Source of the DNA: Oculina patagonica
Lineage: Eukaryota
Assembly (NCBI RefSeq): GCF_052425735.1
Contig: NC_135760.1
Coordinates: forward strand, 14,942,001-15,006,000
Length of the DNA: 64,000 bases
Direction: 5' to 3'
In this document: positions 1 to 17,900 of the stretch, piece after piece
Position numbering within the stretch: the stretch's first letter is position 1
How the letters are laid out: the number at the start of each line of letters is the position of its first letter
Program-made: the position numbers and the translations under genes
Notes under the pieces: model-generated
What the model was told of the DNA's origin: nothing
The model's database searches: none
The model's input: only the letters and a program-made list of their open reading frames with translations

Positions 1-584
1 GCCGCAAACAAAGGATTCAATATCAGATGCAGATGAGTTCGCAGAATACAACGGAACATCGCAGAGCTTTGCAGGTTACAGCTATAAGCAAAATGAAGAC
101 AAGTTCTACAAAAGTTCTTCCAAACATGAAGACGAAAAGAGTGCATTTCCAGGAAGGAATGACTCGAGATCATTTACAGCTCAATTCGGTGAAAAGGAAA
201 CCAATGACATTCCAGAAAATGATTCCATTAAGAAGGCCCAAAAAGAAGAATCGCATAACAAAAAGCAGAAATCTTCTGATGAGCCCGACTACAAGGACGA
301 AATTGAGAAAGAAGCTGTTGAACAAGAAAAAGAAGCCGATAAAAAAGCTGAGGAAGAAGGAGGTCACCATGACAACGACGACGATGATGATGATGACGAC
401 GAAGATGACGACAGTGATGATGAAGATGACGATGATGAGCAGAATGATGAGGATGATGAGGAGTTAAAGGACGAGGGACACTCCGTGCATGATAACACTG
501 AGCAAAAGGACGACATTAACAATCCCGCTGAACAGTCTTTTGCCGTTTCACCCACAGTGGTACCGGGAATGTGTCCGCCATGTC
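1..584 (+). CDS. Exon: Asp/Glu-rich acidic region ending in MCPPC (frame +2)
   Basis: Frame from position 2 is open: [13 protein letters not shown]...[36 protein letters not shown]...VVPGMCPPC, then donor GTAAGT at 585. The listed ORF 27..467 is an off-frame reading. Confidence 0.85.
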
Positions 585-2891
585 GTAAGTAACACTTTAT
601 CGTTTTTAACAGTTTCGCGGCTTGATTAATCACCTAGTCCTCAGAAAGGATAATATCTCCTGATGTAATTGCTGATGTTGCAAACGGTTATCACAAGCAT
701 CCAAATCTTACCATGACTAAGATTGGACACGATAACTGAGAATAACAAAATTACAAATACAGAAATGAGCATAAAATAACTAACATCGACTGTCCCGAAG
801 AATGCAGGAAAATGACAAAGCGAAATAAACGAGAAAACTTACAAGACGAATGTGACGAATCCAAAACTTAAAAGACGAATTGGAAGCTATAAACTGGAAA
901 CTCAAAACCTAACTAACAGAATCAATAAATTACACGTCAACAGAAGATATACAAAATGCAAATGAATATGACATGTTAAAAAAGGCTACTAAACAAAGGA
1001 AACTAACTACACGAAAAATAACACGAAACTATGAAACTCTGTACGAACTATGAAATTCACGTACGAAAATTCTGGCGCCCACAATAGCGAAGTGCGCGAG
1101 GTCTAAAAATAGAATGCAAATGATGTAACCTCCACGAGGCTCAGAAAACATCAGCGTGTTATGAGAAAAATAGAAAGAATCTAGGCGAAGTTTTCGTTTG
1201 ATGAAAGTATTTTTATGGAACACCAGCTGTTTTAGAAAGTGTTTAGGAAAATCGTCCGCCATTTCGGTTTGTGTGTCTGAGTCTTGTCTGAGTCGTGACG
1301 CCACTCGCGCGCTTCGGTATTGCCAACTGCGGATTAAAGCCCGAAAACTTGCGTCTACTTGCGTCTCCGCTTGGCCAAGACTTGCGTACACTTGCGTTGC
1401 ATTTTATGTTGTATTTTCTATAATGTAATTCAGGAAGTTCATTTATGTGGCAGTTGCATTTGTTCAAAAAGGTAGTTACAAGAGCATCATAGTAGTGAGA
1501 AGCGAACCATTTACTCAACCTCGTTCCCAGGGCTTTTCCCTTGGTAATTTGGAACGGGCGGGAAAAGCCCTGGGAACGAGGTTGTTATTTACTATCATAG
1601 GACATAAAACCAGTACACAGTTGATATTTTAATTGGTCTTGCTCATTATTTCAAAACAGTAAAATATATTTCCTTTCTTTTTCTTCAGCCAAACCAACTA
1701 AAGCACAAGGTAAGAGGTCTAACACCAAAATACTGTCCATTCAAATAATTCTTAGAAATTAAGCTGGTATCGCAAAAGTGCATATAAAAGGTTTTTACTC
1801 AGTGAGAAACTTCTCATCTTAGAACTTAAACAACATTAAAAAAGATTCATTTTTTGCAAAAACTACTAAAATTGCAGCCAGGATTCGTGATTCAAGTCTG
1901 CAAAATGTTTGACACTGGCTTAGAATAACGTTAAGACATTCATCTGACCCTGAAATTAGATAATTGCAGCAGAAAGGAAGAGAAAGAAAAAAAAATACTA
2001 GTATTGATATTAGGACAGAAAAGTGGTGGTTATTTATCTTAAAATATAAAAATGCCAAAAAAAAGAAATATCTATTCGTATTAGTAATTTGCGCTATATT
2101 TTTTCCCTCCCCAGCTTGTAATGCAAAAATCGACCTAGCTATTCTAGTCGACGGGTCTTCAAGTGTGGAAAGGTACGGTGTCGGTAACTTCCGAAGGATT
2201 ATCGACTTTGTCCGAGGCCTAACGATGGGTTTCGCCATATCAAGAACTAACACCCGAGTATCCTTGACTGTCTACGGAACAAGACCGAGAATGATCTTCA
2301 ATTTCCGCAGGTTAGTTGCACGCAAAGCTGTCGTTATCAAACTGAACACGGCTTGAAACTGGCAAACGACAAATGATTTCCAGCTCTGAGTTTTTATTTT
2401 TGATGTATAACCGTGCTACTGCCTACAGCCGCGTTGCTTTACCAGGGCCTCTGTTGATAACAATTTTAAACATAAAACTGATAGGGTAGCCCCCCCCCCC
2501 CCCCCCCCCATTAAAATAAAGGCCTTTACTACTTTTTGTTTTGAGGAAGCAAGTAAGTGAAATGCCGGCGAACCTCATAAATAAATACGAAGATCGACAA
2601 GACCGCAAAGATAAGGCCCTGGTAAAAAATAAAAATTTCACAATGTTGAGTACACACATATATTTTAACGCGGTGGGGCTGTTTTTTTCTCTATATTTTT
2701 TTCTCTTTTCTCTATAACACCGCTTTACACCCTTTTTTTATCTTTTACAACACATTACACAGTCCCGGTGAAACTTTCTGGGGGAAAAAAACGCCGACTC
2801 TATATATAAAACGGGGATATTTTCTATATCTTAACTAAACACACGAAAAAAAAAAACAAACTAAACAAAAAAAAAAAAAAATAACCACCCC

Positions 2892-2960
<69 letters not shown>

Positions 2961-5900
2961 AAAAAAAAAAAAAAAAGTCGCAAGAAATATTACAAAGTAC
3001 CTAAAACGGAAGTTAAAGTATAAAAAGACTTCATTGAAAAGAAGTCGATACCAATTCTAAACTAGCCAGAACAATACATTTTATCATTTCAGATACCAGA
3101 GTAACCCGCAGTTGTTCACGGGTCTCAATCGTCCCATTAACTATCCACGAACGGGCGCAAGAACAGGCCGAGCGCTCAGCTACGCGTATAGAAGGCTTTT
3201 CAGCAGAAGTCGACGTTCACGTTCCAGGAAAGTTGTTGTGGTCATCACTGACGGCCGCTCCATTGATGACGTACATAGCGTCTCCAAGCGACTGAGATCT
3301 CGTGGCGTCACCATCTACTCAGTAGGGGTGGGAAGGTACTTTAACGCAAAGGAACTTGATTCCATGGCAACCGATCCCGACAAGACTCACGTTTTCACAT
3401 CGGATTTTAAGCAGTTGCAGTACATCACGAACGATCTCAAGAAAGCCATTTGCATGAGTAAGTGTTCACAAAGTCACAAAACGTTTGTCTCTGATTACTT
3501 TTACCTAAAGTTGTAACTTGATCCGGAACTTGTGAATTGTGTGGTGAAAAGTTAAATAAATGCCAGGCACTTTAATGAGCGAGGCATCGTGAAAGGGTAG
3601 CTTTTGAGATCTATGTAGATAAAAAAATGAGAAGGCTTGTTTATAGAGAACTCGCATTTAAAAAATTAAGGTAAAAAAGAGGAGAACACTTGCCACTGAA
3701 ACTTAGAAACTCTTTTACATCTTTTCTTGTGTCAATTTTCCCGCTTAAAAAAGTAAGTCCATACTAAATTAGCGGATATGCTGTTTTTATCCAACGATTA
3801 AATGAGTTATCATCTTCAACAAGGTTCAAAAGCCTTGCAGACACGTCGACGCGCTTTCTTTTTCTCTCTCATTATATTTTAAAACAAAAGAATCGTCACA
3901 GTAACGAAGTCTCCTGTTCTACAGGGCCCAGTTGTTAGGGTAGATAACGCTATCTGCTGGATAAATCACTATCCAGTGGATAGCGTAGTATGTTTTGTTA
4001 ACATTTTATCCAATGATTAGCGATTTATCTGCAGGATAGCGTTATCCGCCCTTCGAACAACTGGCCCCAGGAGTGCAAAGTATAACAATTTACTCGGATT
4101 AAGATGATTAAAAAAATTGTAGTACTATCACTGTTGTTTATTTTGACTTTTTTTTGTTCAGGTGCTGGTGGTACTCTTTCGATTTCTAAATTGCAGCCAT
4201 GTGTGTGTACTGGGCCTACCAAACCTGTTGGTCCAACCAAGCCAGGCGGTCCAACAACACCAGGTTTGATTAACTAGAATTTTTTATATACTAATTAAAC
4301 ATTTAAAAAATACTCATTCTATTTCAAGTCTTTGCTACGTTAACAGCGTTTTGCAATTTTAAGCTACCTTAAATCTACAGACTATCCAAAGATTACTCAA
4401 TCAAGTAACTTTTTCAGTTGCTCGATATATATTTTAGAGTCGTAGTAACGTAAGTCACTGACATAATCGTCATGATTCATTGTAGCATCAGGGAAGACAA
4501 CAAAGAAACCAGGAGGTCCAGGAGGCCCTGGGGGCCCCGGCGGTCCGGGAGGTCCCGGTGGTCCAGGAGGTCCCAATGGCCCAGGTGGCCCCGGTGGTCC
4601 GGGTGGTCCCGGAGGACCCGGGGGACCCAAGCCTGGTAAAACAACAAAACCAACTAAAGCTCCTCCAGGTAAGAACTAAACATATTAAGTTTAAATTACT
4701 TTGCTGTCGGATGTCACGAAGTTAAAATTGTTTCTATATTTCAACAGGTAAACCCGGTGGGCCGGGAGGTCCAGGAGGACCGGGTGGGCCCGGAGGTCCG
4801 GGTGGACCCGGGGGACCCGGAGGACCAAGCGGACCAGGAGGTCCAGGTGGTCCGGGCGGCCCGGGGGGACCCGGAGGACCGAAAACAACTCCGAAACCAG
4901 GAACAACAACAAAGCCTCCAGGTAAACCTGGGGGACCTGGCGGACCCGGAGGTCCAGGAGGTCCCGGTGGCCCAGGAGGCCCAGGTGGTCCTGGGGGACC
5001 AGGCGGACCAACAACTAAGAGGCCAGGTATGGTTGTGTTATTTCTTTTGAACAGCGTTTTAACACAACCTTATAAACGTTACGTTATTCGATATAACGTG
5101 TTGTTAATAAGCTATCCAGAAACCAAAAAAAATCAGAAATCAGAACAGAAAGGGATGTTCAGTTTCTTATACGATGAATTAGAACATCGCCCATCTTAGT
5201 GTATCATGAAGGGTGTCAATTCGTCATTATAAACTTGAAAATCTAAACAAGCCCTAAAAAAATCGAACGTCCTGTCAGACTTGTTTAGAATTTTTTAACA
5301 CTGATTCCAAAAACGTAATGAATATTGCAAATGCTTACAAAATAACCCTTGTCACAAGACTGGACAATCTCAGATGATATATTGATATGCATCAAAAACA
5401 CTTTCAAATTCCTTTTGAATGAAGGAGGTCAGTACAAATTCGAAAGTTCTGCCATGCATTCCAGTGGTATTTTAGTCTCCGTAGAAAAGCACATAAATTT
5501 AGGTACAGTGAATGTGAAATAAATCGCCAAATTTCAGTGTTATTGCGCATATTAAAAAATAACATTCTAAAAACGTTTTCTGTAAGCACAGTGTCACAGT
5601 TAGAATCCCGGAATATACTTCGTAGTCTCAGTTGAATGCTCGAAACTTTTAGACTTTCGAATTGTTGTCTTTATTACTGGAATTCTTCTTGCAGGTAAAT
5701 CCACAAGACCAACAAGACCAACTAAAAAAGCGCCGGGAACACCAGGTGGCCCTGGAGGACCAGGCGGTCCCGGCGGACCCGGAGGTCCAGGTGGTCCGGG
5801 GGGTCCAGGAGGTCCAGGAGGGCCCGGTGGGCCCGGCGGAAAGACAACACCACGTCCTGGAAAAACAACAAAGCCAACGAAACCCACAAAGAAACCAGGA

Positions 5901-8900
5901 ACTCCCGGAGGTCCGAGTGGACCGGGTGGTCCTGGCGGACCAGGAGGGCCTGGTGGTCCGGGAGGACCTGGTGGCCCCGGTGGCCCTGGGGGACCTGGAG
6001 GAAAAACGACACCACGTCCTGGGAAAACGACAAAGCCAACCAAACCAACAAAGAAACCGGGCACACCGGGAGGTCCAGGTGGTCCCAAGGGGCCTGGCGG
6101 GCCCGGAGGCCCGGGAGGTCCCGGAGGACCTGGAGGACCCGGTGGACCGGGAGGTCCTGGTGGTCCCGGAGGCCCAGGGGGTCCAGGAGGACCCGGTGGT
6201 CCCGGTGGGCCTACAACGAAATCTCCAAGAGTGCCAACCAAGAAAACCACACCAACTCCGTATGCCCCGGGTAAGCCTAATGGCCCAGGGGGACCAGGAG
6301 GTCCAGGGGGACCCGGCGGACCCGGTGGTCCGGGTGGACCAGGAGGGCCCGGTGGACCAGGAGGACCAGGAGGTAACGGAATACTTCTTGTTTTTGCTTT
6401 ATGTATCGCGTCATTTATGTATCATTGATGTATCGTTTAGGTATCAGCTGGACCAACTGAGAACGAGAATCGCCGAGATTTGAAGGACCAGAGTCATAGG
6501 CGTACGAGGCGGGGGGGGCGAGGGGGGCTGCAGCCCCCCCAGTGCCAAAATTTTTCGGGCAAAATGGTTAGAATTCGGGCAACAAGCCTAGGAAAAAAAT
6601 AGAAAATAAGCCGACAAATCTCAACATTATGTTCAAAACGAGTTACATCAACAGAAAAAGTATTGGAAATATACCGAACTTTGTGGTTCAAAAGTTATCT
6701 GCTTTTGTTTCCTCTCGAACATTGATCATGTTCGATTTTTCTCGCAAATTCTGCGTGATCCCTCAGTTTGTTTCAGTTTCAATCATTTTGAAGTGAGTGA
6801 AAAATTGGCGAGGGCGACCAGAAGTTAGGATTTTCCATTTTCCGCACGGTGGATCCAGTGTAAGACCTTAAAACAAAGTCGTTACAAATGCGATGAAGCT
6901 TATGCTTTTGACTCAAATGTAAGTTCTAAGGACTAGCTCAAAACTTTCGACGAAATTTTTTAACTCATTTACCCCTGAATTTCTCACACGCTTTTGTATT
7001 TCTCTCAAGTGGAGGAAAAACAATGTAAAATTGGCTCCCCAAAAATACCTTATTTTTTTTAACAAGAGTGAATAAATAAAATATTTCCGAAGAAAAATGA
7101 TTCAGTGCATTGGCATCTTCGGGCAATGCCACGAAATTAATTAAGAACTATCGTTTCCCTTAAGCAAGTAGGAAAAGTTTGTACACAATTATTTCAATGA
7201 ACGTTTTGTTGTCCGTTTTATATGCCTTTAAACGCATGTCATTTTTTTTTTCGGGCAGTTAGGTCTCCGCCCCCCTAGGGCTGAAGGTGCCCGTACGCCT
7301 ATGACCAGAGTTGCACTAGAGTTGTCTTCAACTCTAAGCGAGCGTAGATAAAACAAGATAAATTAAAACTCGCGACTTTTAATGAAAATTTGAACATGTT
7401 CTAATCGGATAAGAGCACAGTACAGTTGACGAGGTCGTGGAGAGCGCTTGAAAGTTTCAAGGAGCGTTATCTCTTTGTTGTTTGGCCAAGGCGTAAGCGA
7501 CGTTTCTTTCCAATTTCGCTTCCTTCATTTAGCAGAACTGATCTACTGATCTAAGTGCTCTTTTGTTTTTTTGAGTCTAATGCTTGCGTGCGCTTTGCGC
7601 ATGCGCATTAGACTCTTTGTTATATGAAAAAAAGCTGTTAGCAATCCCAAGGGAATGGTTCGGGATCGATAATTGTTCGCTGTAATGTAGAAAACAATGA
7701 TCAGCTGCAAGAACGGACTCCGTACGGACACGCACGATTAGTTTCAATTAAAAACAGCCAATCAGCGACACGTGTTCCCACGCATAATTAAAAGTTCTTT
7801 CTCAAGTCACGATTATTGAACACTTGAACAGGACGAAATAATTTTCCAGTTAAGACATTTGTAAGCTTTTTGTGAAAATAAATCTTCGTTTTCAGTTCAG
7901 TTAAGCACTTGTGTTTTCGTCTTGCTTAAAAAGCAAGACGTCTTTGAGAAAAAATATTTCGACGGCGACTCGCGTTTATTTACACAATGCGACCAAATAT
8001 TTATTTTGTTTTAAAAAATAGAAAACTTTACCTCGGTTTTTGTATTTAAGTCATTCGAATTTTGACCAATTTTTTCTTTACAGTGTAAACAAAAACCTTC
8101 AAAAATAAAAGATGTACATGGATAAATGTAAATCAAGTTACGCGACTAAATCAAAATGCGTTTGTTTGGCCGCTTTGCAGTATTACACTGTCCCGGCCTT
8201 TGCCATACACTGAAATCGAATTTCATGCTTTTACGACTCTCAGAGATCTTAAGTTCTTCTTACAGCTAGAAAAATCATAAAATGGTTACATTGATATGGA
8301 AGTGATGATTCGCGAAATTTGTACATCATGATAAATAGTCTTCGCTCCTGTGTATGGTAGCTCGATAATAATTGCCTAGTTTCCAGCGTTCAAAAGGTCA
8401 TCATTATATTGACGTGAGCATTTACACCCGTTTTTAGGAAAATCTGTCACTAAGTGCTTACAGTACAATGGAGTAACAGTCACTATTTCAAGTGCTTTTA
8501 TTGCAAAATCTGTTTCAAGAGTCATCATCAAAATGGTGAAAAATCTGAAAGAAAACGATGTGAAGTTCTTCAACCCTTGTTGTAATGAACATGCTTTTTG
8601 TAAATCGTCACGCAATCTTGTCCAAATGTTTAATCGTTTCTGCTTTTACGGACAATACGGAAGAAGTAACATCAACTCCTGTTCATACTTTAAATTTTGT
8701 GAAGCATATAACATTTATGACTGTTTCGTTTTCATCCATAATCATCCACGATGCCCCTAGCTTGCTATAAGCATTTTAAATTAAACTCCCGAACACAAAC
8801 CTCTAACCAATTTTAACCGGCTTACGAAAACCGCGCAATCTGTATCACTATGCCATACGGCATTAGACTCATGTCACCCTTGGTGACCTATTTTTTTTAA

Positions 8901-11900
8901 GTGTATCGCCATTACTAAACGTTTGAATGACAGTTTGCTGTTGAAGACAACATTTATTTTAACACTGCTCACACATTGAAAAGCGCGTTCTAACCTCTGG
9001 TTACTTCTGATGAGCTTTGTTATAGCAACGCTCACAACAATAATTAAATAGAATTGAGGCTATGCGTAGGATAATATAATAATTTATGTAACACTTTTTT
9101 ATCATCCTTAACAGTTTTCGTGTAAATCTTTGCTATGTACTAGTAGTAACAAACAGAGTTGAACCAACCTGTCCATACTCTTTCGCCATTCTAGGCGATA
9201 TTAGAAATTCACATTATAAAATTTTCAATAACGAGGAAATTTGTTTCTATAATCTTTCAGGACCGGGTGGACCAGGTGGTCCCGGAGGTCCAGGTGGTCC
9301 GTATGGTCCCACGACAAAGAAGCCAGGTAAACCAGGAGGGCCTGGGGGTCCTGGAGGTCCAGGGGGACCAGGCGGACCTACAACAAAACCCCCCGGTAAA
9401 CCAGGAGGGCCAGGAAAACCGGGTGGTCCCGGTGGCCCCGGAGGACCCGGCGGTCCAGGAGGCCCAGGAGGTCCCGGTGGCCCCGGGGGTCCAAATGGTC
9501 CTAAAACCACAACACCACGACCGGGTGTACCAACGAAGAAGCCAACGACTAGAAAGCCGGGATCACCAGGAGGGCCCGGTGGTCCTGGAGGCCCCGGAGG
9601 ACCAGGCGGTCCGGGTGGACCGGGTATGTCACATATCTGTTGATTGTATATTGCTTTACATATTGTCATGATATCACGTGTACAATGCGCTACACTCAGT
9701 AAATTGCATTCCGAAACCTTCCACCAATATATTTTTCATATATTTAGGAGGAGGTATAATTGATTCGATGCTTTTCGGCTTTTTTCTATGATTTCAAAAC
9801 GCAAAAACCCTCTAAATAGTTGTGAAATCGTGGTTGAAATCATGACGTACTTTTTTTATGGGTAACTTCACACGGCAGGGGTATTTTGCAGAACGCATAA
9901 CGCAGAATGATGGTCAGCGGTTTGCGTGCGGTAAGCTTTCACTCCAGTTTGCTTGCGGTTAGCTTTTATTTGTTGGTTAGGGCATTATACTATCGCTGTT
10001 CCGTCACCACATTCTGCGCTCTGGGTTCTGTGTTCTGCATTCTGTATTTTACATTCTGCCTTCGGCAAAATATTATTCAATATTTCCGCCGTGAAAACAG
10101 TTACTATTGCTCGTAACCTTCCTTGACCTGAATTAGACCAATACCCTGTTTAAATCCAAGGAACACAGGGTAATGGTCCATAAAGAAAGTTACTACTTAA
10201 CCAGAACTAGGAGTTGCAGAACTAATCAGCCCGATTACCATGGTTTAAACTAGAAATCAGCATAAGAGAGGTGAAAGATAGGTTACTTCAATGGATATAA
10301 ATGTATTGTTGTGAATAAAACCCTGCTATTGTCATGTCAAACAGGTGGACCGAGCGGTCCGGGAGGCCCCAGTGGACCCGGCGGTCCTACGACTGCGAGA
10401 CCCGGTGTCCCAACTAAACCAACCAAGCCAACAAAGAAACCGGGTAAGCCGGGTGGTCCAGGTGGTCCTGGTGGACCCGGTGGTCCAGGAGGACCCGGAG
10501 GCCCTGGTGGTCCGGGTGGTCCAGGAGGCCCCGGTGGACCCGGTGGATCTACAACTGCCAAACCCGGTGTACCAACTAAATCAACCAAGCCAACAAAGAA
10601 ACCCGGTACTCCAGGTGGACCCGCAGGCCCTGGAGGTCCCGGGGGACCCGGCGGCCCCGGCGGGCCTGGAGGCCCCGGTGGACCCGGCGGACCCACAACT
10701 GCTAAACCCGGTTTACCAACAAAACCAACCAAGCCTACAAAGAAACCGGGTACTCCTGGTGGTCCAGGAGGTCCAAAAGGACCCGGTGGACCGGCAGGCC
10801 CCGGAGGTCCAGGAGGACCCGGTGGCCCCGGCGGGCCTGGAGGCCCCGGTGGACCAGGAGGGCCAGGTATGGTTTATGTTTACTTTAAAATTTTATAACG
10901 GTTTTTGAAAGGTCAACATCAATCCGCGAGCTTTGAGTCTTACATGAAACTTGATCGTATCAGAAGCAAATAGAATTAAGTGTGTTCATAATAAAAATTT
11001 TGGTTTGTATCTGGTCTTAAAATCGGTTTAAAAAAGTTGGTAAAAAAGTATAAACTGAATTTTTGGTAACTCTCTGTTACCTTCATCAGAGTTAAAATTG
11101 GTTCAGTTTTTGCATTATAAGTTTTTATACACCGCCGGTCTCTAGGGATGTTCCCAATGTTAAATAAACTTGTGGGAAATGCACATGCTCATTCACACAG
11201 TTAATGTCCTGGATAGAATGTAGCGCTTCTAGGAATAGGCGTTGTTGCCTATTGTTGACATTTCGTTGAAGGTAAAAATGAAAACTTTCTTAAAAGCATT
11301 TGAGATTGCAGTTAATATATACAATGCTAAAATACTTGCAAGAAAATGAGTAATCAGATAAGGAGTTCGCTATCATTAACTTCTATGGAACACCACAATC
11401 TGTTTAAATATCACAAAATTAAGTCTAAAACGAAATTACTGTCTTTTTAATCCAATAGCGCAAAGTCAAAACTTGTTTAGAGATCGTTTAAATTACCGAC
11501 AAAAACTCTGTTACCTTATGAAAATGTGGCTGAAAGTTTAAATTCGCACAATGCAAAAGGTTTACATAAGAACTACACAGTCTAAAGGCGCTTTCAATTT
11601 GTCAGGACTGGCCGGCCGATCCGGTGATTTTGAATGTGAAATGGGCCTTTCCCAGGGGATTTTCCCACAAATCCACTACAACTGTATAATATTTATGCAT
11701 TGAACGATTCGACAGGACCTATCTGACTAACAACGGAATTCTGTTCTCGAATTTACCGGTCTGGCAACCTGTAAGCGACAAGTTTATCCTTATAAGCATT
11801 CGGTGATCAACTTAAAAATTTGAGTTTGGTGCTGCAGTATCGACAAGAATACGTGTCAGTTACTACTTGGGGCTTGGGATTAACAGGGATTGTGTTTGAT

Positions 11901-14900
11901 TCCTTGTTATAAGGTGGACCTGGAGGACCTCCAGCAGGACAACCAACAACACCAGTGACAAAGCCACCGGGTACCCCAGGGGGCCCCGGAGGTCCAGGGG
12001 GACCTGGCGGACCAGGAGGTCCGGGAGGACCCGGGGGACCCGGAGGACCAACAGGGCCAACGAAGCCAACGAAACCCCCTGGTAAACCCGGGGGTCCAGG
12101 TGGACCAGGAGGGCCCGGTGGTCCGGGAGGTCCGGCGGGACCAACAACAAAGCCACCAGGAAAACCCGGCGGACCAGGGGGACCTGGAGGACCAGGAGGC
12201 CCGGGAGGTCCTAGTGGCCCAGGAGGACCCACAACAAAACGACCAGGAACTCCAGGTAATGATGGACAAAACAAGGTCTCAATATAACAGTATTAGAAGG
12301 AACGTCGGAGGTATAGAGTTTGGTATAGCATATGTCTTGTATGTTTAGCATATAGCACTGGTGAGCAACAAGAAGCGTGGGCTTATAAGAAACGAAAGCT
12401 GCAAGTTGTGACATAATTATATCAAAGGAAAAATCAGGAAAACAAACCTGGTATCGATCTAGACAAAATAATAGGCCATTTCCGAGTTGCTATTTTCCTC
12501 TGTGTCACAACGAGTCTTTTTGTCAGCTGTCTTGTGAGGCCATTAATGTGGAAATGAGTATCACCAACACGTTTTGCACGAGGCTCTTTAAAAATAGAAA
12601 CAAAAGGCAACTAGGAAATTGCCTATTGGAAACCTCAAATGTCAGCTCCAAGTCAAGGAAATTTGCTGTGCGTTAGACTTCAGCTGAGGTACTTGTATTG
12701 CTTTCTTGGGCGAGACACTTAACTCTCAGAGTGGTTCTTCCTACCCAGGGATATAAATGGGGATTTACGAACCGTTAGGGCATGCAACGTGACAAAATGG
12801 TAGTGGTTACCTGCGATAGACTCGCATATGCCTACCCTTAGCCGATCGACATTACTTTGTCTCTGGAAAGGCTTTACTTATTTTGTACATAGCATTGAAC
12901 ATAATTTTTATTATTCAGGTGGCCCAGGAGGTCCCGGTGGCCCGGGAGGACCCGGAGGACCGGGAGGCCCAGGAGGTCCAGGGGGACCCGGCGGTCCTAC
13001 CACTAAACGACCGGGATCACCAGGAGGTCCCGGCGGTCCCGGAGGGCCTACTACAAAACCAAAACCAGGAAAACCCGGAGGGCCTGGAGGCCCGGGTGGA
13101 CCAGGAGGTCCAGGGGGACCCGGAGGTCCCGGCGGACCAGGAGGGCCTGGAGGACCAACTACGAAACCTTCAAAACCAGGACAGCCCAAGACGACACCCA
13201 CGACTAAGAAACCAGGAAAACCAGGAGGTCCGGGAGCTCCTGGGGGACCGGGAGGTCCAGGAGGACCCGGGGGTCCAGGAGGCCCGGGAGGCCCGGGTGG
13301 GCCTGGAGGACCAGGCGGCCCCAAGACAACAAAACCAGTTCCTGGAGTGACAACGAAACCAACCAAGAAACCAGGGACACCCGGCGGACCGGGAGGTCCA
13401 GGGGGACCAGGAGGCCCAGGTGGGCCGGGAGGACCCGGCGGCCCCGGCGGACCTGGTGGACCCAAGACAAAACCTCCTGGTACTATAACCAAGCCGACCA
13501 AGTATGCACCCGGAAATCCAGGCGGTCCCGGGGGACCGGGCGGACCAGGAGGCCCTGGGGGACCCGGAGGACCCGGTGGACCTGGAGGGCCACCCAAGAC
13601 TACTCCTAAAACACCTAAGACACCAGCACCAGGTTAGTGCAGATAATATGGCAAAATAGGTGAAAAATATTTGATATAAAAAAGTCAAATAATATTCAGC
13701 AGCGTTATCCTTTCTCCTTCGTCATTACTATTGTATTCATAACAGTATTGTATTGCTATTGTATTGCTATTATAATCACATCTCTTTTTAAGATAGATGT
13801 CCACTTAAACATGTTTTTTTTTAAGATGTTGCCCTATTTCAGCCAAATCAATCTGTGACAGCAATCTTTAAATGTATGCCGACGAAAATATGAAAAATAG
13901 CGCCTGAAGATGCAAATAATGGTTGCATGCGCTTCTTGTTCAAAAATCCAAAGCATGATATGGTTGATTGACGGGCAACCATGAGTTGAAATATAAAACA
14001 TAAACTGCTTAACTAGCTTTTTCTTAACTGAATCGAATGTTTCCTTTTTGAAAAGCCGAAAGCACAGTTAAAATCCTACACCATTTTATCCGTTCAACCA
14101 AGAATGGTTAATCGCACTTTAGCTTTGTGGTCAGTCATTTACAAAAAACTTAAAGTTTGTTGTCACGAGCCGATTTTCATTACTCAGCTCATGATCAGAG
14201 CCTTGGTTTGAGCCTTGCTCGAAGTTGGTTGAAAAATTAAAATCCCAAAGCGACATTACGTGTGATTAAAAACGTAAAATATTAAACTAACTAATAAACA
14301 GGTGCCCCATGAGGGATTTTGCTATCACTGATGTGTGATTTATTATCTTACAGGCAAACCTGGTGGACCTGGCGGGCCAGGTGGCCCCGGAGGACCAGGG
14401 GGACCAACCACAAAGCGACCAGGAACCCCAGGGGGACCAGGAGGACCTGGTGGTCCCGGTGGTCCGGGTGGACCCGGAGGTCCAGGCGGCCCCGGTGGTC
14501 CAGGCGGTCCAACAAAGAAACCTGGAAAGCCTGGGAAAAAAACTACAACTAAACCCCCGGGAGTACCCGGTGGCCCAGCAGGTCCGGGTGGCCCCGGAGG
14601 TCCAGGAGGCCCGGGAGGTCCAGGAGGTCCTGGTGGACCCGGGGGGCCAGGGGGACCCAGTGGTCCTACAACTGCTCCCCCAGGGAAACCCGGCGGACCT
14701 GGAGGTCCCGGAGGACCAGGAGGTCCCGGTGGTCCTGGTGGTCCGGGAGGTCCAAAAACATCTCCACCCGGGAAACCGGGTGGCCCAGGAGGACCGGGTG
14801 GGCCCGGAGGTCCTGGAGGCCCTGGAGGACCCGGTGGACCCGGAGGTCCCGGATGTGTTATGAAGCCGACGGTACCAGGAGCAAAAACTACACCGAAAAT

Positions 14901-17900
14901 TGGTCCAACAAAACCTGGAGCTGCCACGCCAACAACTGGAAAACCATGTATCACGATTCCACCAGGTGACCTGATGATAAAGCTTATAGCAAAGTGAAAG
15001 CTTGCTATCTATCATTTGATTGTATCGTGTTTATATTATAAGCATGTAATAAAACTTGCCACTAACTGTAGCAGTCTATTGTTTCTGCTGTTCTTAAGAT
15101 ATTCTCCTTGCCTAACAAGTATTATTGTTGCTTGTCAGTCTTAACTGCCAGGGTCCCATTACCTGTTACTAGGAAATTTCAGCAAACCATTGCCTTTTCA
15201 ACCTTGTCTTTTAAATTTGGAAAGTAGCATAGTTGTTTACGCACATCAGTAATATATTCTCATAATCATTATTTTAAGAACTGCTGTCGTTTTATGATTA
15301 AGGTTTTACCGTTGTAAGGAAACCAACAACTGTTCCCACGCGGCCAACTGGACCATCAGGACCCACTAAAAGGCCTGCTGCTACAACCTCACCCAGTAAA
15401 GGTATTGATCTGTTCAATCTTCTGACGAATTTTTTTTGTTTGAGGTGACTTACTTATACCGAGCAGACTTAGCAGAGCCGTGCAATCAAATTCAGTATGT
15501 GTGAGCGTGCACCATACGCCGATAGTGTGAGCAAATCGCTTTGCCAGAAATTTTTCCCCTTGCGTGAGTTTTGAGAGCTACATAAATCCATTGGTTCATG
15601 CTTTTAGCTGTGCACTATCGAGTTATGGTGTAAGCAGGAAATTTGGAAAATACTCAGGAAGTTAAAATATTGCGTTCCAAAGTTTGGCGGTGAAACTTAA
15701 CATATATGGGTTGAAATTAAAGTTAAAGATGCTGAACTCTGATGAAGGTGTAAAGTCACCGAAAATTTAGGTTGTAAAAAAACAGATCGGCTTAAAAAAC
15801 CGTTTCATTTCATAAATGTCCTGCACCGATCGCCATACTGGTTCCTGAGTTTTAAAAAATTAATATAGTATAAATATGTATTTAAATGTACTGTAGACAT
15901 CTCGAAGGGTACTAAACAATTTTTCTCTTATTCTGAACACAGTGTGCAAAGCAAAGATGGATATTGCATTCGTGATCGACACAGGCAGTGGTGTCAAGAA
16001 AATCTTCAGCGGTATAAAGAAATTCTTCCTAGAACTGGTCGACTCCTTTACCATTTCAAGCCAGAACGTCCGGGTTGGTTTGATTGAGGACTCATACCGT
16101 CCTCAAGTCAAGTTTAGCTTCGGTCAGTACAACAGTCCTAGACAGATTAAACGCGTTGTTCAACTGTTACAGCCAAAAGGCGGAGCTAGACGGACAGGAA
16201 AGGCATTAAAACTCGCATCAAAACGCCTCTTTCCCGCCAGCAAGGGAAAGAAAACGTTAATTGTACTGACCGCGGGAAAATCTTTCGACCCAGTGCTTGG
16301 TCCGGTACAACAGCTAGCTGCTATGGGAGTCGATATCTTCAGTGTTGGCGTGGGGCCTGGTGCTAGTCGCAGTGAGGTTCTTACTGTGGCTAAAGATCCT
16401 CAGCACGCGTACGAGACAAACTTCAAAGGCCTGGGGACTATAGTGAAACGAGTTAAGGACAAAGCATGCGCAGGTTTGTTCATCTTCAATGGTATTGTGA
16501 TAATGTTAAAGTGGAAAATCAGACAACGCAACTTAGCTTCACTATATTAAAATTCATTACCCTTAATCTCAATAAACGTACATTAACTGCACTGTCCAAC
16601 AGAGACAAACACAAATTTAAGCATACTAAAATCAGTCAATCAGAATGTGTAATGGCCGGTCCCCGGCATGACTTCTACGTTTTGGAATGGGTGAAGTTTT
16701 CTTAACTGTTTAGACACTGTTATGGCTAAAAATTTAACTATTTAAAACATTTTTTAAATTTGATTTCATCATTATCTTTTTGCTGTTTTGAGCTGTATCA
16801 CCGAAGTTCTGAAATAAATCTCTCGTCGAAAAAGCTTGTCCTGGGTACTTCTCTATTATAAACCACTTCGCATTTTGTGGTATTTTTATGATTAAATATC
16901 ACGCTCAGAAAACTTCATATTATGTTAAGTTCTGTCTTTTATACTAAATTGACCCTTTTTATTTTTATCACAGAGGCAGGAGGCAGTCCACAGAGACCGA
17001 AAAAGCCAACTAAACGGCCAAGTAAGTAATTAACAAATGTAATTAATATGAAATTAAAAAAAAGTTTTAATAAATTAATTTCATTAATACCCTAAAATGT
17101 AGCGTACTGTTAGTATGTTACAACTAGCATCTCGGGACTACTAGCACGAAACGACTTTACGTAATTTTCTGTCAGTTCAGCAAGATCAAAAGAGAATCAT
17201 TGGGACGCCAAAAGACAATTTGATGTCAAATTTTCGCCGACATTTAAAATCCACTGACTGCGAAACACATCGTCTTTGCCAATTAGTTATTTTAACCCTA
17301 CTGGCAGCATGCAATTTCATCCCTTATTTACATCGTGTTGCTAATTGTAAACATCTGTTCTCAAACCAGAACCACCGAAAGCTGTAGCCATCTTCCCTCT
17401 AAACAAACGAGCTCGGGGTAAAGACATCGGTCCCTTGAAAAACAGCCCAGGAATTCTGTACAATGTTCGACCCGCCCCAGGACCAAACGGCCAACCTGGT
17501 GGAGCTGTCAAGTTCCCTAAATACAAGACAGGCTACGTTGAGTTCCCCAACAGAGGAAAACTGGATACTAAAAATTCCATAACCGTGATCGCCTGGGTAA
17601 AGCCGGACGGACCGGGAAAAATCGTCGAGTACAAGCCAAGAGGTGTGACGTTTGGCATTCGTTCGCCGGATACTCTGTATGTTCGTTTTACTCGCCGAAA
17701 CGGACGGCCAACCAAAACTGTCAAAACAAGGCGACGAGGAGTAACTCTTCGAAAGTGGAATTACATCGCAGTTACGTACGATCAGCGGACCGGGACTGGA
17801 ACCATTTGGCGAAATTCTCGCCCCGTTGCCTTCCAAAAACTTGGTTGGATTAGACTGGCCACAAAGAATGCGCTGAGACTGGGCGGGGCTACTCGCGGCC

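Follow-up and report, generated by a model that had tools for sequence, protein, structure and literature searches.

A conserved Gly-Gly-Pro domain in a giant matrix protein of stony corals is a candidate segmented collagen-type helix

Within a 64,000-nucleotide stretch of the Oculina patagonica genome (contig NC_135760.1, positions 14,942,001 to 15,006,000 of the forward strand; hereafter the window), eight exons encode a domain composed of short blocks of Gly-Gly-Pro (GGP) triplets that alternate with spacers rich in Lys, Thr and Pro. Stony corals secrete the giant extracellular-matrix protein that has this GGP domain at its center, and we consider it somewhat probable that the domain forms a collagen-like triple helix, pinned by disulfides and segmented by cationic spacers that act as hinges. 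An initial annotation of this DNA had described about 1,230 residues of (GGP)n blocks with Lys/Thr/Pro spacers on eight exons between positions 4486 and 14965, and this description was borne out: the exons, named E1 to E8, lie on the plus strand, are all of phase 1 with canonical AG/G...G/GT sites, each have a length that is a multiple of three and sum up to 3,693 nt, equal to 1,231 codons (Table 1).

The core of the domain, which we defined as the 1,194 residues between the flanking cysteines, consists of 45.9% Gly, 31.5% Pro, 9.1% Thr and 8.3% Lys. It carries 111 Lys and Arg residues and not a single Asp or Glu (net charge of about +111), lacks Cys and His altogether and contains only 10 aliphatic or aromatic hydrophobic residues. 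Perfect runs of two or more GGP triplets (31 runs of 2–14 triplets) cover 693 residues; when single substituted triplets were allowed, the domain resolved into 27 blocks of 4–17 triplets (median 10), separated by 26 spacers of 5–21 residues (median 13; 29% Thr, 27% Pro and 24% Lys). Two-thirds Gly, as initially annotated, is correct inside the blocks only; across the whole domain the proportion is 46%. Blocks nearly always start with G(K/T)P after K(K/P/R)P and run at their ends into TTK..., KTT... or GGKTT..., and every Pro precedes a Gly or another small residue. Adjacent blocks are of unequal length, as exemplified by the successions of 5, 6, 12 and 7 or of 8, 4, 10, 12, 10 and 9 triplets.

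The minus strand of the array is equally open, reading as (PPG)n with hydrophobic spacers, and when used as a protein query it retrieves many true collagens with PF01391. Both points speak for the GGP frame being an artefact, that is, a non-coding 9-nt satellite or the reverse of a (Gly-Pro-Pro)n collagen encoded on the minus strand, a reading to which we give practically no credence. RNA contigs from public runs of different studies were aligned to positions 3400–9399 of the window; these runs hold 20–32% of the stretch's words, which equals its exon fraction. All five spliced joints recovered from the contigs, which derive from three studies, are GT..AG on the plus strand (Table 1), and the upstream VWA exon, the linker exon E0 and GGP exons 1–4 are spliced together as predicted. 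The exons called from the sequence are thus real, being transcribed and spliced. For the joints from E4 to E9 and on to the following VWA exon, the assignment is based on canonical sites, phase fit and conservation in other corals. Other contig joints, skipping 586, 152 or 3,378 bases, are either not multiples of three or lack GT..AG, and are read as assembly shortcuts over repeats.

Because all spliced joints are GT..AG on the plus strand, the minus strand is not coding. Near-identical RNA contigs of related corals showed 22 synonymous changes versus a single non-synonymous one in the plus frame. This third-codon-position test does not separate the strands (22 of the 23 changes are synonymous on the plus strand and 20 of the 23 on the minus strand), since the wobble sites of the GGP frame and of the opposite PPG frame coincide. 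The artefact reading is further contradicted by the minus-strand spacers, which are hydrophobic nonsense, by an exon structure conserved in six species and by ratios of non-synonymous to synonymous substitution rates (dN/dS) of 0.04–0.06 in the plus frame across the spacers; the splice joints together with dN/dS refute it. The minus-strand (PPG)n open reading frame was also considered as a real collagen and rejected: its database matches are compositional, with 25–65% identity, and include no orthologue.

Orthologues were obtained with a non-repetitive N-terminal exon of the gene as the query, which retrieved 24 orthologous fragments, one of them from Pocillopora meandrina; another N-terminal fragment clusters with the Orbicella faveolata 'dentin sialophosphoprotein-like' protein (XP_020622443.1), which matches the first exon alone. 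The DNA around six fragments was retrieved and walked downstream from the N-terminal exon. The six other coral assemblies exhibited the same locus, with the exon order acidic exon, VWA, linker and GGP exons, and an SLC22-like transporter gene lies upstream wherever that region is visible. Two species have the full set of eight GGP exons, and P. meandrina has seven of them. In the P. meandrina assembly (GCA_942486045.1, CALNXJ010000049.1; L020:11687-21281), the orthologue is annotated as a 10,030-residue product and the acidic first exon as a separate 385-residue gene, a split that is probably a model error.

Codon alignments of the orthologous exons from these six corals gave 92.2–94.5% amino acid identity over the GGP domain at a dS of 0.79–1.14, a dN of 0.038–0.056 and a dN/dS of 0.037–0.062; for the acidic exon at the N-terminus of this gene, identity between corals is no higher than 34–72%. 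The initial annotation had taken the scrambled synonymous codons as a sign of protein-level selection and had proposed this very comparison, which supports it. Indeed, 51 of the 64 possible 9-mers are in use over 231 triplets, only 2 of 200 neighboring triplets are identical at the DNA level, and Tandem Repeats Finder detected a 9-nt period with merely 67–84% matches. Exon lengths are often identical among orthologues, with gap-free alignments for E2 (92/92), E3 (225/225), E4 (120/120), E5 (173/173) and E6 (113/113). The lengths of individual blocks are likewise kept across corals (in triplets: 14–16 and 10 in E2; 11–12, 10–12, 17–18 and 11 in E3; 10, 7 and 8–9 in E6). Within E3, two 54-residue units share 53 of 54 amino acids at a third-position identity of 39%, and a 22-residue spacer is identical between the units (22/22) despite 10 synonymous differences. 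Because units and spacer remain identical in the face of so many synonymous changes, the spacers are constrained as strongly as the blocks, and the domain is not a drifting low-complexity linker.

The two glycines of the triplet differ in their constraint. Counting substituted in-block triplets that are flanked by perfect ones, we found 11 of the type xGP, two GxP and no GGx in the window, and 32, three and one, respectively, in the six orthologues. Combined (43 xGP, 5 GxP and 1 GGx, with the orthologue counts not being independent events), the Gly after Pro is replaced about nine times as often as the Gly before Pro. The position after Pro accepts Ser, Ala, Lys, Asn, Thr and Tyr/Phe, and the Gly-Pro dipeptide is near-invariant. 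One invariant Gly per triplet leads to a Gly-Pro-Yaa register in which Yaa is usually Gly. Such a pattern is expected of a Gly-Pro-Yaa helix and is unlike that of a lattice using both glycines or of a random coil. Gly at each third residue over long runs is in itself true of all 27 blocks; this is trivial for GGP, where two registers fit.

This asymmetry bears directly on the possibility of a polyglycine-II (PGII)-type assembly, in which threefold polyproline-II (PPII) GGP strands would pack through two glycine faces, either within a chain or as sheets between chains. The initial annotation had favored a PGII bundle or a silk-like elastomer over a triple helix, a preference that the xGP to GxP ratio of about 9:1, the VWA flanks and the Cys pairs now oppose. 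In a 3-fold helix, a period-3 GGP sequence would line up all prolines along a single face and leave two glycine faces free, and poly(Pro-Gly-Gly) fibers reportedly showed PGII-like packing in old studies, which our literature search did not recover. Glycine-rich PPII bundles are, moreover, a recognized natural domain class (bioRxiv 10.1101/2023.11.25.568672), and the bundles of the snow-flea antifreeze protein, ALK GlyR and phage gp38 have a period-3, glycine-rich, PPII-prone sequence in common with the coral domain. However, these bundles consist of equal-length strands joined by turns and carry Pro mainly in the turns, whereas the coral domain has Pro in every triplet, unequal blocks and long spacers. 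A lattice that uses both faces should also constrain both glycines equally, contrary to the observed ratio. Unequal neighboring blocks weigh against back-folding and, together with extended Pro/Thr/Lys spacers of 5–21 residues that are not turns, cannot fold into a regular antiparallel bundle, and no compact domain appears in the AlphaFold2 (AF2) model. We therefore regard a PGII-type assembly as improbable, and an intramolecular PGII bundle as unlikely.

A collagen-type helix is supported by the setting of the domain, which resembles that of collagen VI: VWA domains lie on both sides, and Cys pairs sit at both ends with none in the core. Exactly two extra cysteines per chain are found at each end, in LQPCVC before the first block and in GGPGC...GKPC after the last, where one Cys directly follows the last triplet (GGPGC) and the second lies 33 residues further. 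LQPCVC is identical in seven species, and GGPGC...GKPC is kept wherever the loci extend that far. In the VWA-collagens (VI, XXVIII and the FACIT-like XII, XIV and XXII), a domain with Gly at every third residue is similarly placed between VWA domains with cysteines outside both of its ends, and phase-1 exons split Gly codons as in the coral gene. Among solved structures, the coral C-terminal VWA domain is nearest to collagen VI alpha3. The helix of collagen XXVIII is heavily interrupted, a further likeness to the coral domain.

The differences from collagen VI are nonetheless considerable. The coral domain spans 1,194 residues with 26 interruptions, as opposed to a nearly uninterrupted helix of about 335 residues; its Xaa and Yaa positions are filled almost exclusively by Pro and Gly and form no charged pairs, and Pfam Collagen is silent on it. 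Collagen VI is an alpha1/alpha2/alpha3 heterotrimer, whereas the coral genome holds no GGP paralogue as a partner. The remainder of the coral protein (an array of LamG_3 domains, cationic Cys modules, Arg-rich helices and SUEL lectins) is also unlike that of the collagen VI chains. Collagen IV, with a collagenous domain of about 1,400 residues whose 20 or more interruptions lend it flexibility, likewise has a long and much-interrupted collagenous domain, but features diverse X and Y residues as well as 7S and NC1 domains, none of which occurs in the coral protein. Cnidarian minicollagens possess very short Gly-X-Y helices of 12–16 triplets. They resemble the coral domain in being cnidarian, in their short helices (the coral blocks have a median of 10 triplets) and in a covalent assembly that relies on Cys, but they are small, with one helix each that is flanked by polyproline and six-Cys cysteine-rich domains, in contrast to the 27 blocks, Thr/Lys/Pro spacers and Cys-free core described here. 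The closest kind is the VWA-collagens VI and XXVIII, with an interruption density like that of collagen IV and helix lengths like those of minicollagens. Three features set the domain apart from all of these: X and Y positions restricted to Pro and Gly, a regular and conserved grammar of Thr/Lys/Pro spacers, and an unlike host protein.

Several observations weigh against a triple helix. Pfam reported no family on six GGP exons, PF01391 Collagen included, even at E ≤ 10, a null result to which the composition filter of HMMER may contribute. By library standards, the domain is hence not a classical collagen, as the initial annotation had stated: it fails formal membership of Pfam Collagen, while there is moderate support for its working like a collagen-type helix. 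The AF2 model of a single E7 chain was without secondary structure at a predicted local distance difference test (pLDDT) value of 47, but any collagen chain modeled alone would give the same picture. The G(K/T)P triplets that open the blocks suit the alternative register. Three chains of +111 each would repel one another, since the domain has no acidic residues, and no trimerization domain was identified in the protein. Gly in Xaa or Yaa is among the most destabilizing residues in host-guest peptides, and blocks of about 10 triplets without hydroxyproline (Hyp) or clamps may be unstable. A trimer prediction with three copies of E8 residues 104–203, which scored 0.26 versus a mark of 0.32, weighs neither way.

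The feasibility of such a helix is supported by a 2026 peptide study (PMC13673506), in which clamped polyglycine strands joined a triple helix. According to this study, the geometry of the triple helix tolerates Gly in both Xaa and Yaa, which even stabilizes it when the strands are clamped in register; the study also asks whether glycine-rich helices matter in evolution. Its designed peptide Ac-(POG)6-Gly6-(POG)5-PO-NH2 shows that Gly can occupy Xaa and Yaa if the strands are kept in register, for which the coral Cys pairs are possible clamps. It differs in being synthetic, with a six-residue Gly tract between Pro-Hyp-Gly clamps, whereas the putative coral helix has no such clamps. In the coral domain, pre-organization and clamping could come from the Pro in each triplet and from the Cys pairs at the two ends.

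Searches for relatives or partner chains returned compositional matches. A word-indexed HMMER search with E8, phmmer of E7 against 1.84 billion representative proteins and a query of the ESM Atlas together yielded nothing beyond compositional or antisense-collagen matches, bacterial LPXTG linkers and mucin-like proteins, and a PDB sequence search with E7 found chance-level matches only. As true orthologues were later found by synteny, these direct-search negatives are unreliable. More generally, negatives obtained with low-complexity queries are not proof of absence, given that Pfam, phmmer, the word-indexed search and the Atlas all missed existing orthologues. When the coral's own genome was searched for GGP paralogues, all strong matches fell inside this gene and no possible partner chain emerged; the other matches were (GEP)n/(GSP)n or Thr/Pro/Gln arrays. 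Kilobase arrays with a 9-nt period were seen at C11:4.63 Mb, C2:4.69 Mb, C10:21.12-21.17 Mb, C3:8.77 Mb, C3:17.84 Mb and C6:34.92 Mb. In these six regions one strand reads as (Gly-Glu-Pro)n and the opposite strand as (Gly-Ser-Pro)n, with several frames open and no GGP, and the arrays could be acidic collagen-like genes or satellites. A literature search on GGP/GPG repeats, poly(Pro-Gly-Gly) and coral returned no description of GGP arrays, either in corals or elsewhere. The skeletal proteome paper on Oculina and Stylophora reports a different VWA protein (TSP1 + F5/8C + VWA) and no GGP peptide, so that nothing assigns the GGP protein to the skeleton.

The main rival account of the domain is that of a non-helical, hydrated elastomer or tether, in which the GGP blocks would be disordered entropic springs and the Lys/Thr/Pro spacers the working parts. 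The spacers would then either be sites of Lys cross-linking, comparable to the KP-type domains of tropoelastin, or form cationic, O-glycosylated motifs that bind polyanions at even intervals, for which sulfated glycans, acidic proteins of the matrix and the poly-Asp N-terminus of the protein itself are candidates, and the chain would act alone or in a cross-linked network without any triple helix. We view this as possible though on balance unlikely. The composition fits well, as Pro and Gly make up 77% of the core with only 10 hydrophobic residues; this is far inside the range that Rauscher et al. 2006 are said to have drawn for elastomeric, non-amyloid proteins, a threshold taken from the literature. 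The lack of a fold in the AF2 monomer and of a Collagen HMM match, the sequence-specific constraint on the spacers (22/22 residues with 10 synonymous changes), as for functional motifs, the pairing of a polycationic domain with a poly-acidic N-terminus, and the presence of lysyl oxidase (LOX) genes all agree with it. Tropoelastin, resilin and flagelliform silk also alternate Gly/Pro-rich blocks with Lys-containing ones at a very high Gly plus Pro content. Yet the coral domain has neither the hydrophobic residues of elastin nor the Tyr and Gln of resilin, and it shows a strict period of three and an asymmetric glycine constraint. A coil leaves the roughly 9:1 glycine asymmetry without a reason and does not account for the strict three-residue periodicity or for near-invariant block lengths at a dS of about 1. 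Known elastomeric repeats usually show rapid turnover or concerted evolution, with DNA-level homogenization and length change, whereas in the coral domain the wobble sites are saturated and the block lengths deeply conserved. Finally, the Cys pairs at the ends and the VWA flanks suit a multi-chain collagen better.

For the segmented collagen-type helix that we prefer, we infer triple-helix formation, the trimeric state, disulfide pinning, post-translational modification and a mechanical role from the sequence. Three chains would wind into a collagen-type triple helix, with the Gly before Pro in the axial position, Pro in Xaa and the second Gly in Yaa. The cationic spacers would cut this helix into about 27 short rigid segments and serve as hinges as well as modification or binding sites, and both helix ends would be pinned by the conserved Cys pairs in the way known from VWA-collagens such as type VI. 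The product would be a thin, semi-flexible, polycationic stalk of about 340 nm (at 0.286 nm per residue) that would keep the globular domains apart and multimerize them. Genes for LOX and prolyl 4-hydroxylase (P4H) are present in the genome, which speaks to feasibility only, and for the helical and elastomeric readings alike; the Lys cross-links and Thr glycosylation suggested in the initial annotation are guesses. Three tandem loci with a lysyl-oxidase catalytic domain lie within 37 kb at C2:15956085-15993084, and at least five P4Ha_N loci are located elsewhere in the genome.

In collagen chemistry only the axial Gly is obligatory, and stability comes from Pro/Hyp or side-chain pairs. A more specific proposal, plausible but short of probable in our judgement, is that the stony-coral domain is a naturally occurring (Gly-Pro-Gly)n triple helix with Gly in Yaa throughout and hence almost no side chains, divided into some 27 mini-helices by the conserved cationic spacers and held by cystine-knot clamps. 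If this were true, the domain would represent a distinct, library-invisible collagenous class and the living counterpart of a low-imino, glycine-rich helix that has so far been only synthetic. A natural Gly/Pro domain of about 1,200 residues with a period of three, kept across several coral families at a dS of 0.8–1.1, makes the question of glycine-rich helices testable with a natural sequence. It constitutes the unannotated, strongly constrained core of a coral matrix protein of about 10,000 residues, which could have a role in tissue mechanics, adhesion or the skeleton-forming matrix.

Table 1. Exons and domains of the GGP gene within the window
Feature	Position	Strand	Basis
N-terminal acidic, poly-Asp region, end of exon 2, closing in CPPC	1..584	+	frame continuous with upstream DNA; donor C/gtaagt at 584/585, phase 1, fits next acceptor
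VWA domain, first exon (N-terminal flank)	2115..2340 (3' limit approximate)	+	Pfam VWA 1.2e-09; acceptor 2113-2114; kept at 6/6 orthologous loci
VWA domain, second exon	3112..3457 (5' limit approximate)	+	Pfam VWA 3.1e-22; GT..AG joint 3457>4162 in contigs of three runs
Linker exon E0 with LQPCVC, about 27 residues ahead of first GGP block	4162..4263	+	joints 3457>4162 and 4263>4486; LQPCVC identical in six orthologues
GGP exon E1, 61 codons, 1 block	4486..4668	+	RNA joints at both ends (4263>4486, 4668>4748)
GGP exon E2, 93 codons, 2 blocks	4748..5026	+	RNA joints; orthologues 95-98% identical at dS 0.66-1.22
GGP exon E3, 226 codons, 4 blocks, two 54-residue units	5695..6372	+	joints 5026>5695 and 6372>9261
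GGP exon E4, 121 codons, 4 blocks	9261..9623	+	acceptor confirmed by joint 6372>9261; orthologues 96-97% identical
GGP exon E5, 174 codons, 4 blocks, 48-residue units	10345..10866	+	predicted splice sites; orthologues at three coral loci
GGP exon E6, 114 codons, 3 blocks	11914..12255	+	predicted splice sites; orthologues
GGP exon E7, 238 codons, 6 blocks	12919..13632	+	predicted splice sites; orthologues
GGP exon E8, 204 codons, 5 blocks, ends in GGPGC...GKPC(I/V)T(I/V)PPG tail	14354..14965	+	tail conserved at two orthologous loci
Predicted small exon E9, Thr/Lys/Pro/Arg-rich, bridging to next VWA	15303..15401	+	phase-1 acceptor and donor; sole open Thr/Lys/Pro frame
VWA domain (C-terminal flank), collagen-VI-type	15943..16473	+	Pfam VWA 3.9e-27

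The gene extends beyond the window on its 5' side. Its start lies 2.6 kb upstream, at C3:14939427, where a Met precedes a hydrophobic, signal-like peptide, and the 5' part (C3:14939427-14942584) comprises this peptide, an acidic exon of about 300 residues and an exon that is Tyr/Pro/Gln-rich, Lys-rich and then poly-Asp, leading to CPPC, with phases compatible throughout. The joining of exon 2, which ends at 584, to the VWA exon is deduced from phase. Among solved structures, the best relatives of the C-terminal VWA domain are collagen VI alpha3 (9han_C, 1.5e-86 summed over seven domains; 4igi, 6.7e-13), followed by the mussel proximal thread matrix protein 1, PTMP1 (4cn8, 8.6e-22). Downstream of this domain, Pfam recognized Laminin_G_3 exons, more VWA and SUEL lectins. 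From its N-terminus, the protein runs through a signal-like peptide, an acidic poly-Asp stretch, a VWA domain, the GGP domain, another VWA domain, a long series of LamG domains, VWA again, cationic modules and SUEL lectins. If the intron after E8 (14966-15060) were retained, the frame would stop after 10 codons, and an AATAAA is present at about 15048; a short isoform ending just past the GGP domain may therefore arise by intron retention.

Several introns contain repetitive material, and an Rfam search of 3.5–16 kb of the window gave no match. A long A-rich tract (2839-3020) in the intron between the first two VWA exons reads as poly-Lys in two frames. The intron between E3 and E4 holds a 1.33-kb element (7568-8896) with at least 40 scored copies at 99–100% identity out of 606 genome-wide candidates, over which RNA-contig depth reaches 220–790, as compared with 3–15 over the host exons. 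It has neither a long open reading frame nor an Rfam match, and terminal inverted repeats of at least 14 nt are absent. The element resembles a non-autonomous repeat that is very young, transcribed and present in high copy number. The intronic pieces at 3800-4000 and 6400-6700, the latter with a 1-base length polymorphism at 6511, have many loose ends and very high contig depths, with a maximum of about 2,000, and are probably other dispersed repeats.

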